Of a stretch of DNA of 64,000 bases, positions 23,675 through 27,596 are shown piece by piece. Each line of letters opens with the position of its first letter. Positions within the stretch are counted from its first letter, which is position 1. The notes beneath the pieces were generated by a model. It searched no databases. It was not told the DNA's origin and saw nothing but the letters and a program-made list of their open reading frames with translations. This stretch comes from Schizochytrium sp. TIO01 (lineage: Eukaryota > Protista > Bigyra: Labyrinthulomycetes): the NCBI GenBank assembly GCA_004764695.1, contig SMSO01000031.1, positions 7,236,761 to 7,300,760 on the forward strand. The letters are read 5' to 3'. The position numbers and the translations under genes were made by a program.

Positions 23675-26600
23675 TTATTCTAGTCTCGCAGAAGCTTGCT
23701 CAAATATGCGTATTGATGGGAACCTTCTTCTTGCTTCAGAAACAGACTCTCGTGCACCCAACTTGATGAGAATCTCAAGTCCTTTGCGATTCCATGAGAA
23801 ATTATAAATTGCCCGACACGCCCATTCTTGCACGTCTGCATTCGTTCGATGTGAGCGCATGGCGGCAACAATCTCTTCACCCACATTCAAATCTTGTCCC
23901 AGGATCTCTCGGTTGCGATCGTTCAAAGCAAGGTTCGACAATGCTGTACATGCGTATCTTTGCACGTCTGCATTCGTTCGATGTGCTCCCATGGCGGCCA
24001 CAATCTCTTCACCCACATTCAAATCTTGTCCCAGGATCTCTCGGTTGCGATCATTTTTAATTGCAAGATTCGACAGTGCTCTACATGCACTACTTTGCAC
24101 GTCTGCATTCGTTCGATGTGCGCATGCGGCCACAATCTCTTCACCCACATTCAAATCTTGTCCCAGGATCTCTACGTTGCGATCATTTTTCACGACAAGA
24201 TTATACAGTGCTCCATGCGTATCTTTGCACTTCTGCATTCGTTCGATGTGCGCATGGCGGCCACAATCTCTCACCCACATTCAAATCTTGTCCCAGGATC
24301 TCTGCGTTACGATCATTTGAAGCAAGATTACACAGTACTCCACATGCATACCTTTGCACGTCTGCATTCGTTCGATGTGCGCGCATGACGGCCACAATCT
24401 CTTCACCCACATTCAAATCTTGTCCCAGGATCTCTGCGTTGCGATCATTGCTTGAACCAAGATTCATCAATGCCCGACATGCATATTCTTGCACGTCTGC
24501 ATTCGTTCGATGTGTACACATGGCGGCCACAATCTCTGCACCCACATTCAAATCTTGGCCCAAAATCTCTCGGTTACGATCATTTTTCACGACAAGATTA
24601 CACAGTGCTCCACATGCGTCTCTTTGCACTTCTGCATTCGTTCGATGTGCGCGCATGGCGGCCACAATCTCTTCACCCACATTCAAATCTTGTCCCAGGA
24701 TCTCTACGTTGCGATCATTTTTCACGACAAGATTATACAGTGCTCCGCATGCGTATCTTTGCACTTCTGCATTCGTTCGATGTGCGCGCATGGCGGCCAC
24801 AATCTCTGCACCCACATTCAAATCTTGTCCCAGGATCTCTGCGTTGCGATCATTTGACAGCAAGATTCCACAGTGCTCCACATGCACTACGTTTGCACTT
24901 CTGCATTCGTTCGATGTGCGCGCATGGCGGCCACAATCTCTTCACCCACATTCAAATCTTGTCCCAGGATCTCTTCGTTGCGATCATTTTCACGACAAGA
25001 TTCCACAGTGCTCCGCATGCGTATCTTTGCACTTCTGCATTCGTTCGATGTGCGCGCATGGCGGCCACAATCTCTGCACCCACATTCAAATCTTGTCCCA
25101 GGATCTCTGCGTTGCGATCATTTGAAGCAAGATTCCACAGTGCTCCACATGCATATCGTTTGCACTTCTGCATTCGTTCGATGTGCGCGCATGGCGGCCA
25201 CAATCTCTGCGCCCACATTCAAATCTTGTCCCAGGATCTCTTTGTTGCGACCATTTTGAAGCAAGATTCCGCAGTGCTCCACATGCATATCTTTGCACTT
25301 CTGCATTCGTTCGATGTGCGCGCATGGCGGCCACAATCTCTTCACCCACATTCAAATCTTGTCCCAGGATCTCTTTGTTGCGACCATTTGAAGCAAGATT
25401 CCGCAGTGCTCCACATGCATATCTTTGCACTTCTGCATTCGTTCGATGTGCGCGCATGGCGGCCACAATCTCTTCACCCACATTCAAATCTTGTCCCAGG
25501 ATCTCTGTGTTGCGATCATTTACAGCAAGATTCCACAGTGCTCCACATGCATATTTTTGCACGTCTGCATTCGTTCGATATGCGCGCATGGCGGCCACAA
25601 TCTCTTCACCCACATTCAAATCTTGCGCTAGAGTAACTTCATTCTCTTTATTACTGAAGGTAAGAGTCCTGACACAAGCACATGCTGCGGCCTGCACTGC
25701 TGCTTCGCTCGCATACTCTTGCATAATACGAATCAGTACAGGGCCTATACCATAGGTTTTCACTGCCGCCTCAGTATACTCCACAGCAGCCTCACCAGAA
25801 AAAGCAAAACGAAATGTCCAAAGCGCTTCAGAAATCACTTCGGCATCGTGTTGTTCATCCTTCAGGATTTTTATCAAATGAACAAGGATACCCCGCTCAC
25901 GAACCTCTCTTCTCAGCTGATCGTGGCCCTCTTCAGCTTCAGCTGACTCGAATTCGCCCTCCAAAATGTCGTGCAGAATCTGTAGCGTTCGTAAAAAATC
26001 AACTCGCTCGCCTCTCTCAGCCAAATCTCGAACGAGGCCTTGCACCATTTCCACACTCACACTCTGCTTTGCAGATGTGCGATGGTTCCGTTTTGAGAAG
26101 GCAGCAGCAAGTCCACGTATAAGTCTGCTCGATCGACGTTCAACACCGCGAGACTCGAACCTTTTTAAGACCTCCTCAGCAGTAGGCCTCTTCGCGGGCT
26201 CTTCGTCCCAACAAGACTCCATGATGCGGACGACCCAGAGTTTTACCGGGATCTCATCAGATATTACAGGGCGCTCCCCTGCAAGAACTCTGCTTTCAAG
26301 CTCTCCTGGGTGATAAATCAAATGCTCGTATGGCGTCTCCTCATGATAAATCTCCCACACAACCACACCTAGAGAATATGTATCTGCCTTTGTTGTCCAG
26401 CGAGCAGGCGCCTGAAGTACTTCTGGAGCCATATACACGGGGGTTCCAGCCACAGAAATTGTCTCCGCCAAACTTGTATTTGGACTCGTTCTGGCAGCAA
26501 GACCAAAGTCTGCTAGCTTCACTAGACCAAAATCTTGACTGAGAAGTACATTGGCGGGTTTCAGATCACGATGAATCACATTCTGACTATGGAGATAGCA

Positions 26601-27596
26601 GAGTCCTCGTGAAATGCCACGTAAAATGGCCTCTTTATCATCTAAACCAAGTGTAGCGAATGTGCCACTCGGTTTGACCTCATATAGAAGCTCATCTAGG
26701 GACAAGTCACATTTATCCATGACCAAATGGAACCGGTTTTGAATGATGCACGTCCCAAGAAGGCAGACGATATTTTTATGATGCAATCCCTGCCAACTTT
26801 GGGCTTCTTCAAGCAATGCCTTCTGTTCAGCAAGTTGAAGCCGCCCGCGAATCTGGCGTACTCGCTTAATTGCAACTGGCGTATTTGTACTGTCTTCACC
26901 ATGGAGAACACCTGAAACGACTTGTCCAAAGCTGCCTTCACCAAGAATGTGCTCTGGATAATCTATGGTGACTTTTTCACGTGATATTGTCGCCATCTCC
27001 GATTCTTGCGTTTCTCGCAGTGCACGAGTTAAATCTTGAAGCGCTCGTCTTTGTCTGCCCGTTCCAGCACGACCTTCTATAATATCTGTAAGGCTGATAT
27101 CAGGCTGGGCTTTAAGCAATGACAATATGGCTTCAATGTGGTCGTGGCCTTGATCTTGATATTGTTTGATCATATGTTCGAGGCAGATGTGATCTTCTTC
27201 AGCATCGTCGAGGTCCATTTGCTCGACGGATGCAGGCGGTAATGGGATCTCAAAGCGGATTCGGCAGACCTGGATCAATGTTTGCAAGCGTTGCTCCACA
27301 TCTGAGAGCACTTGAGCAGCTCGTTTCGTGTCCATAAGTTGTAGAATCACGGTGGAGTCGCTATGGTTGGGATCAAAGAACTCACGAAGTAGCGCGATGA
27401 TGTTGCGTAGAGTGGCTTCAACCTGGATAAAGTTGATGTCAGCTTGGTGCAAGGGCTCCAGAAAACTGGCGAGCTTGCTAAAGACATTGTTGAGGTGTGC
27501 AGCTCTTCGATGGCATGTATTAGTATGCTCAAGAAGTGTCGCACCCTCGCGAATTAGCTGAAGCGATGATGTGAAGCTTGGCGGGATGCTTGGCAT
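23675..27596 (-). CDS. MLKL-NTD/HeLo-like four-helix domain + TKL-type protein kinase + 14 highly conserved armadillo repeats (frameshifted within the repeat array)
   Basis: Kinase motifs are intact: GEGSFG, VAIK, HRDLKPAN, DFG, GTPVYMAPE, DTYSLG, CW..P..RP. ARM unit LGQDLNVGEEIVAAMRAHRTNAEVQxxACxALxNL continues through ORFs 25086..27701, 24952..25218, 24201..24887 and 23675..24280 to a capping repeat and stop at 23675. ATG at 27596 is preferred; 27689 is possible. Confidence 0.9.
23790..25625 (-). repeat. Coding tandem repeat array, 14 units of about 132/135 bp (ARM)
   Basis: Anchor ccacattcaaatctt occurs at about 23881, 24013, 24145, 24275, 24407, 24542, 24677, 24812, 24946, 25080, 25213, 25346, 25478 and 25610. 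Confidence 0.97.

Follow-up and report, generated by a model that had tools for sequence, protein, structure and literature searches.

The stretch of DNA analysed here, referred to below as the window, comprises 64,000 nucleotides of the genome of the labyrinthulomycete Schizochytrium sp. TIO01 (assembly GCA_004764695.1, contig SMSO01000031.1, positions 7,236,761 to 7,300,760 of the forward strand), and all window positions are counted from its first letter. On its minus strand, the list of open reading frames (ORFs) and a three-frame translation delimit a conceptual gene at 23675–27596, which begins with an ATG at 27596, ends in the last of its frames with a stop at 23675–23677, and encodes an N-terminal helical domain, a protein kinase and a run of 14 near-identical armadillo (ARM) repeats. 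We consider it probable that these repeats are the C-terminal ARM solenoid of a multigene family, whose arrays are homogenised while the binding groove is diversified, and that the copy in the window is probably disabled.

The array itself lies at 23777–25637 on the minus strand, and was delimited by Tandem Repeats Finder (TRF), by the recurring anchor LGQDLNVG, by alignment of the units and by the Pfam families Arm and ARM_LRRK2. Its units are numbered in the direction of translation, from u01 (25506–25637) to u14 (23777–23908). TRF reports a single tandem array at 23828–25625 with a period of 132, 13.5 copies, 90% matches and 2% indels, and the distances between successive anchors are 132, 132, 133, 133, 134, 134, 135, 135, 135, 132, 130, 132 and 132 bp, giving units of 43–45 codons. 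A preliminary description of this stretch, made from the letters alone, had called the scaffold of the units almost invariant even at synonymous sites. This was borne out: 15 unit positions (5–9, 12, 13, 15, 17, 21–24, 26 and 27) carry one and the same DNA codon in all readable units. The units differ chiefly at positions 11, 18, 25, 28, 29, 32, 35, 38, 39 and 44 and by an optional extra codon. The residues that the preliminary description had listed for helix 3 were reproduced once the breaks in the reading frame were masked. They include the series W,R,R,W,W,W,Y,C,M,C,Y,S,S,Y before the conserved Asn, the G/R/T that follows the AC motif, the loops AV/AS/VVK/GSS/AIK/AL, and the pair after VQ, which reads KY/RY/SS (or RS)/RD/EY/EW, the choice between SS and RS in u06 depending on which base is taken as extra. 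The variant said to be shared by u07 and u11 extends to the whole unit, as these two are identical over all 130 aligned bases; u02 and u03 are likewise identical to one another.

The start of the gene at 27596 is likely by comparison with its paralogues, which begin MPS(I/V)PPSF. The N-terminal domain (26982–27596, minus strand) spans about 205 residues and may consist of a bundle resembling the executioner domain of MLKL together with brace helices; an AlphaFold2 (AF2) model of the first 215 residues is helical, with a predicted local distance difference test score (pLDDT) of 87. The top matches of the N-terminus in the Protein Data Bank (PDB) are MLKL executioner domains (Foldseek E 0.05–0.7; VIA Z 10.7–9.1 over 126–134 residues). 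For helical bundles, VIA Z values under about 13 may be unspecific, which counts against this assignment, and we treat the weak match as a lead towards an MLKL-like four-helix bundle with a brace. The Ser/Thr protein kinase domain that follows (26163–26951, minus strand) has intact VAIK, HRDLKPAN, DFG and APE motifs (Pfam Pkinase, 2.6e-48). Its closest solved relative is RIPK1 (3.4e-32), with the next kinase family four to five orders of magnitude behind. A linker and degenerate, ARM-like capping helices precede the array (25638–26162, minus strand), and it is here that the Pfam matches to Arm (56.8 bits, cut-off 20.6) and ARM_LRRK2 (47.2 bits, cut-off 26.2) in the window ORF begin; the array is followed by a C-terminal capping helix and tail (23678–23776, minus strand), which the three-frame translation places in a frame different from that of the kinase. 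Between the N-terminus and the repeats Pfam gives only Pkinase and neither NACHT nor NB-ARC, and neither the window ORF nor either of two paralogues examined at full length has a Pfam match to a Roc GTPase or COR domain. The gene is therefore not a NOD-like receptor (NLR), because it is without a NOD domain, and not a ROCO protein, because it is without Roc-COR domains.

A search of the 64-Mb assembly for other loci sharing the 132-bp unit, which the preliminary description had proposed as a check, gave 133 DNA matches at no fewer than 14 loci on five contigs. The pattern of the window array recurs in about 20 receptor-like relatives, in which diversity seems to be favoured by selection. Sixteen of the matching stretches were fetched, and the statistics given below for the family refer to 286 full-length units. 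Arrays range from 5 to 48 units across the family, and most of those in paralogues are single open frames of 14–48 units: L022 has 14 units in 1350 residues, L030 has 27 units and L028 has 48. The closest paralogue, L024 (1865–5773, minus strand), is intact, with 14 units and 1303 residues at these coordinates (1311 as an open frame), and is 86% identical to the window gene in the N-terminus and 89% in the kinase. Beyond this genome, the nearest named homologues are proteins of Hondaea fermentalgiana annotated 'protein kinase, putative', which are 40–54% identical, share the same three-part architecture and include members with a C-terminal tail like that of the window gene. Within the databases searched, close relatives were confined to the thraustochytrid Hondaea and further assemblies.

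Two features of the family's genomic arrangement may be noted here. L021 and L022 (G000:C30:177500-191500) comprise three tandem copies of a member with a period of 5.3 kb, and in a self-alignment all mismatches and gaps fall between copy 1 and copy 2, so that two copies look identical over about 5.3 kb. In L025 and L026 (G000:C30:736001-755000), the coding sequence for the N-terminus and the kinase is divided among two or three frames at differing positions, and these members look like independent broken copies within a tandem cluster.

Scaffold and variable face of the ARM units

For a structural model of the repeats we used the longest unbroken in-frame stretch of the array, which lies in the kinase frame at 24273–24854 on the minus strand and takes in the end of u06, the whole of u07–u10 and the start of u11. 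It was modelled with AF2 as u07–u10 together with 46 paralogous four-unit segments. The model has a pLDDT of 93.8 and folds each unit into helices H1, H2 and H3 of 10, 11 and 15–16 residues respectively. In Foldseek it matches engineered armadillo proteins and the ARM domain of LRRK2 with template modelling (TM) scores of 0.76–0.81, including the engineered armadillo-repeat protein (ArmRP) 4rv1 (TM 0.76–0.81, root-mean-square deviation 1.7–2.0). A profile match to 4rv1 (4e-39) aligns Asn 36 of the unit with the Asn of its ALANIAS motif. The conserved Asn of helix 3, which according to the preliminary description binds the peptide backbone in armadillo proteins, is found at position 36 in all 14 units of the window, aligned with that Asn of 4rv1, and in 180 of the 286 units of the family.

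H3 spans positions 24–39, and the variable positions within it (25, 28, 29, 32, 35, 36 and 39) follow one another at i, i+3, i+4, i+7, i+10, i+11 and i+14, a spacing that places them on one face of the helix. The invariant residues V26, A30, C31, A33, L34 and L37 occupy the opposite face. The periodicity is also seen in the moment of variability at 100 degrees, which is 0.50 for the family (permutation P=0.0002) and 0.53 for the window array (P=0.02). The exposure of the variable positions is here deduced from this helical periodicity and from the alignment to solved ArmRPs. Among u02–u13, the seven codons of this face hold 51% of the pairwise amino-acid differences where 16% would be expected, and the share rises to 74% when positions 38 and 44 are added. 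The variable sites of the helix thus map to a single face of H3 on a well-modelled solenoid and are not randomly distributed. In the repeat numbering of designed armadillo-repeat proteins (dArmRPs), unit positions 28, 29, 32, 35, 36 and 39 presumably correspond to dArmRP positions 29, 30, 33, 36, 37 and 40, one residue off, and the remaining aligned positions presumably belong to the peptide pocket as 29, 30 and 33 do. The latter three are named as pocket residues in work on designed binders (PMC11228518).

The near-identity of the scaffold appears to be maintained by exchange of sequence. Internal units of the window array are 0–15% apart from each other, but no unit of L024 or L022 comes closer to them than 8%. 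The two terminal units, u01 and u14, alone find their nearest counterparts at the corresponding ends of paralogous arrays and not among their own neighbours. Edge repeats that seem to have escaped homogenisation in this way are a classic signature of unequal crossing-over. Mean nucleotide distances within the arrays of L022, L024 and L028 are 0.09–0.13. For the scaffold, the proportion of synonymous differences (pS) is 0.082 within the window array and 0.159 between the window and L024 arrays, as against 0.453 outside the repeats of these two genes (dS 0.70, dN/dS 0.12). Since scaffold pS is about three times lower than in the flanking non-repeat part, loci 7 Mb apart must have gone on exchanging units well after the genes had duplicated, which corresponds to the repeat-exchange pool named in the preliminary description. 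In the old arrays L034 and L036, pS within an array reaches 0.7, and synonymous sites are therefore not intrinsically constrained. Of 21 pairs of informative sites compared in the window array, 7 fail the four-gamete test, an indication of either mosaic units or recurrent change. The concerted evolution that the preliminary description had postulated is consistent with all of these comparisons, and exchange of repeats within and between loci across the family is well supported by them. The homologues from Hondaea present another picture: their units are only 40–58% identical and the variation is widely spread. The sharp difference between scaffold and groove therefore characterises those arrays of this genome that have been homogenised recently.

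Reading frame of the window copy

Although the preliminary description was right about the array and the pattern of its residues, it overlooked eight frameshifting indels that emerge from the unit alignment and the three-frame translation, so that the residues it listed can be read only by joining three reading frames. The indels fall in u03, u04, u05, u06 (two) and u11 (three). The frame opened by the ATG stays intact across u01, u02 and the greater part of u03, where it is lost at an extra A within an A run (25257); 56 out-of-frame residues follow, up to a stop at 25086–25088, and the product would be 836 residues long. One base is extra in u04 (25158, GCAAA-C-GATAT), the A run of u05 is short by one A (24990/24991), and u06 has two extra bases, the one at 24891 occupying the same unit position as that in u04 and the other lying at 24856, after which the kinase frame is regained. 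The shifts in u03–u06 total +3, and the sequence from u07 to the start of u11 is again in the kinase frame. In u11 there are deletions of 1, 2 and 2 bases at 24271/24272, 24253/24254 and 24215/24216 (together spanning 24215–24272), beyond which the remainder of the gene, including the natural C-terminal tail and the stop at 23675, lies in another frame. A further deletion of three bases in u12 (24125/24126) is in frame and replaces Met-Arg by Cys. All of these lie on the minus strand of the gene.

It is most likely that the window copy has been disabled in the sequenced strain, recently and possibly in that strain only. The main alternative, which we regard as less probable but take seriously, is that the eight indels are local errors of the consensus, arising from merged haplotypes or repeat-number variants or from an unpolished repeat, in which case the gene would be an intact 14-unit receptor in this strain too. 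Several observations weigh in favour of such errors, or of a lesion private to this strain. Compared with their twin units, u11 has three deletions and u03 one insertion with no substitution at all in either pair (u07/u11 and u02/u03), which would be odd for natural decay. Half of the eight indels lie in short mono- or dinucleotide runs, the indels are located in the most self-similar units, and those of u03–u06 sum to +3 and so restore the frame. Public sequencing runs, which consist here of short contigs that end within the array, bear on two of the breaks: in run X1, contigs lack one base at 24892 and one at 25157, and the in-frame variants inferred from them at these sites have no other occurrence in this genome. 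Furthermore, when four other runs are compared with the window over the N-terminal and kinase part, the strains differ by 19 synonymous and 7 nonsynonymous changes, and the gene has therefore been under purifying selection within the species.

The quality of the assembly elsewhere argues the other way. The arrays of L022 and L024, which are equally homogeneous, and the 48-unit array of L028 are without a frameshift; two tandem 5.3-kb gene copies show zero mismatches or gaps between them; and open frames of 5651 and 4151 residues, used as a check of assembly quality, are present at other places in the assembly. Broken copies are also common in the family, with several members split across frames in their non-repeat parts as well, and the short contigs from the other runs cannot be assigned with certainty to the window locus. 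Both situations have precedents in the repeat genes of fungal NLRs, where stop codons supported by reads have been described alongside a homopolymer deletion that proved to be a misassembly of exactly the kind considered here (PMC12222747). The window gene is out of frame as assembled, and selection may therefore no longer act on it.

Three other signals in the public runs were set aside. An apparent insertion '+TT at 24251' in runs X1 and X12 matches a paralogue unit at C30:5214827 and is hence uninformative for the window locus. A joint between 25532 and 25169 with 33 inserted bases translates to a VQEQACAAL cassette, a motif that occurs in paralogue arrays. Neither this joint nor a skip from 25227 to 25671 could be assigned to the window locus, and neither was counted as a structural variant. 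The locus is represented in at least 14 public studies, and two runs provisionally classed as RNA contain the kinase part. At 26610 and 26612 all four public runs examined differ from the window, codon 364 reading ACG in place of the window's TCA. Either the assembled strain is distinct from all four, or it bears a private double change.

Diversifying selection on the groove face

Over the units of the family, most scaffold positions have an entropy below 1 bit, and the peaks fall at positions 39 (3.5 bits), 35 (3.3), 29 (3.1), 32 (2.7) and 28 (2.7), followed by 25, 36 and 41. The ratio of nonsynonymous to synonymous change (omega) was estimated from independent nearest-neighbour pairs of units, with mutational opportunities weighted by kappa and one change counted for each multiply-hit codon. 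For positions 28, 29, 32, 35 and 39 omega is 2.97 (bootstrap 95% confidence interval 2.25–3.83), for a second tier (25, 36, 38, 41 and 44) it is 1.71, and for the other 34 codons it is 0.62. Taken array by array, the top positions give omega above 1 in 12 of the 13 arrays, with a pooled value of 2.8, and omega is 2.5 when single transversions alone are counted; CpG transitions account for 5 of 60 single changes. In the window array alone, the proportion of nonsynonymous differences (pN) at the variable codons is 0.37–0.40, compared with a scaffold pS of 0.09–0.12.

Certain points tell against an interpretation in terms of a selected binding groove. When the method of Nei and Gojobori is applied with each site's own pS, the ratio falls to 1.0–1.3 and is not significant, although in our judgement this pS is too high, owing to path averaging over codons with two or three differing bases. 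The values of omega above 1 come from counting methods that take the array-wide synonymous rate as their yardstick, as distinct from a recombination-aware likelihood. In addition, the canonical Trp of the WxxxN motif of armadillo proteins, four residues before the Asn, is absent from all 14 window units; position 32 is instead Gly in ten, Arg in three and Thr in one, and in the family it is Gly in 131 units, Ala in 42 and Arg in 34, with Trp in only 17 of 286.

It is unlikely, in our estimation, that no diversifying selection is involved and that the variable positions are simply unconstrained surface residues of a repeat that is often homogenised. Such an explanation would fit the ratio obtained with own-site pS, the many surface positions that vary in the less homogenised Hondaea homologues, and the fact that selection tests can be misled by recombination. 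Homogenisation acts equally on linked synonymous and variable sites, however, and neutrality thus predicts a ratio of 1, not the 2.2–3.8 that is found relative to the array-wide synonymous rate and repeated in 12 of 13 arrays. Nor does it readily account for the transversion-only value, or for the other, moderately variable positions, where omega is about 0.8–1.4, and the pS attained in the old arrays shows that synonymous sites are free to change. For the family, diversifying selection on the groove face combined with concerted evolution is well supported. The proposal of the preliminary description that diversifying selection shapes the units therefore stands at the level of the family, although the own-site ratio does not bear it out; on the window copy, out of frame as assembled, such selection may have ceased.

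The scheme that we favour is as follows. Unequal crossing-over and gene conversion, both within arrays and between loci, would keep the scaffold identical even at synonymous sites, while diversifying selection would keep the exposed residues of the H3 face different from unit to unit, chiefly at positions 28, 29, 32, 35 and 39 and to a lesser degree at 25, 36, 38, 41 and 44. Each array is thereby predicted to present a binding groove of its own. The ligand of the groove may vary and would most likely be an extended segment of protein, and its binding may in turn control the kinase and the N-terminal domain, in the manner of a sensor of non-self. The window copy, with its eight frameshifts, would still display the pattern of the family.

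Possible function and related systems

A peptide-recognition code and a role in immunity are both plausible inferences for this family. A more specific proposal is that its members are single-chain innate immune or allorecognition receptors that dispense with the NLR architecture. The ARM groove would read an extended piece of a foreign (for example viral) protein at about two residues per repeat, trigger the RIPK-like kinase and free the MLKL-like bundle to damage membranes. New specificities would arise as units are shuffled inside single loci and among about 20 of them, and disabled copies would act as a store from which units are drawn. We regard this as speculative and rather improbable in its full form. 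The possibility that the array is instead a regulatory or scaffolding domain for one conserved partner, much as the ARM domain of LRRK2 binds Rab GTPases, and offers no variable recognition surface, is very unlikely: it has in its favour that ARM_LRRK2 is the top Pfam repeat family (172.8 bits, 1e-50 for the paralogue L022), that LRRK2 is among the top profile and fold matches and that the combination of kinase and ARM repeats resembles LRRK2, but the number of units varies from 5 to 48 among paralogues, the groove-face residues vary by unit and by gene with omega above 1, and Pfam finds no Roc-COR domain.

The closest parallel to a diversified groove on homogenised repeats is found in fungi. 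The WD40, ANK and TPR repeats of fungal NLRs of the STAND (signal transduction ATPases with numerous domains) class, such as HET-E, HET-D and the NWD family of Podospora, are highly conserved internally (PMC1805685, PMC2873952, PMC4986451, PMC12222747). Common to both systems are near-identical tandem units, concerted evolution within genes and between paralogues, a handful of sites in each repeat that are under positive selection and lie on the binding surface, pseudogene members (one of those in fungi being intact in some strains), and N-terminal domains of the cell-death type (here a putative one); the window array, at 90% matches by TRF, also lies above the repeat identity of about 85% by which such fungal repeats are recognised. 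The differences are that here the repeats are ARM repeats, a protein kinase stands in the centre of the protein, NACHT and NB-ARC are absent, the host is a stramenopile protist and the family is known from its sequence. Searches of the literature library on thraustochytrids or Aurantiochytrium, armadillo, kinase, MLKL and concerted evolution returned no description of this family.

With dArmRPs and importin-alpha the window units share the three-helix repeat of about 42–44 residues (TM 0.8; the 4rv1 profile match) and the Asn of H3, and their variable positions presumably coincide, at an offset of one residue, with dArmRP positions 29, 30, 33, 36 and 40. They differ in that the Trp of WxxxN is mostly Gly, Ala or Arg, that natural arrays of up to 48 units occur, and that binding of a peptide is here a prediction. 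The ARM domain of LRRK2 (PF23744) scores highest among the Pfam repeat families and ranks with the top structural matches, and there too ARM repeats and a tyrosine-kinase-like (TKL) type kinase are found on one chain; the family described here is without the Roc-COR, ankyrin, LRR and WD40 parts, carries its ARM array at the C-terminus, and has repeats that are both homogenised and hypervariable. As regards the MLKL/RIPK module, the N-terminal bundle is best matched by MLKL (Z about 10) and the kinase by RIPK1, and the order of bundle and then kinase is that of MLKL. The fold match is weak, however, at 12–22% identity, the kinase looks active from its motifs, in contrast to the pseudokinase of MLKL, and an ARM sensor is attached. 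Finally, transcription activator-like (TAL) effectors and PUF and PPR proteins are likewise built of near-identical repeats with a few specificity positions per unit, but they bind nucleic acid at one base per repeat, whereas here there are at least five variable positions per unit and no sign of nucleic-acid binding.

Homogenised repeats with a few selected contact residues are a hallmark of the NLRs that serve allorecognition and immunity in fungi. If the reading of a diversified groove is true, recognition diversity of this kind has arisen independently of NLRs in a stramenopile protist, on a chain of ARM repeats, a RIPK-like kinase and an MLKL-like bundle with no NOD domain, and the family would offer a concrete entry point into the immunity of marine protists. 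Natural ARM arrays that vary at the positions randomised in designed binders could, in addition, supply ready-made binding pockets.

Long open frames are also present over the array on the plus strand and in other frames (plus strand 23794–25755), for example one of 354 residues at 24061–25125 and one of 394 residues at 24452–25636. All such frames arise from the periodicity of the array and might be taken for genes in an annotation. Elsewhere in the assembly, the frame of 5651 residues (G000:C3:856934-867601) contains four ketoacyl-synthase domains and belongs to a giant polyketide synthase gene or one resembling a polyunsaturated fatty acid synthase.

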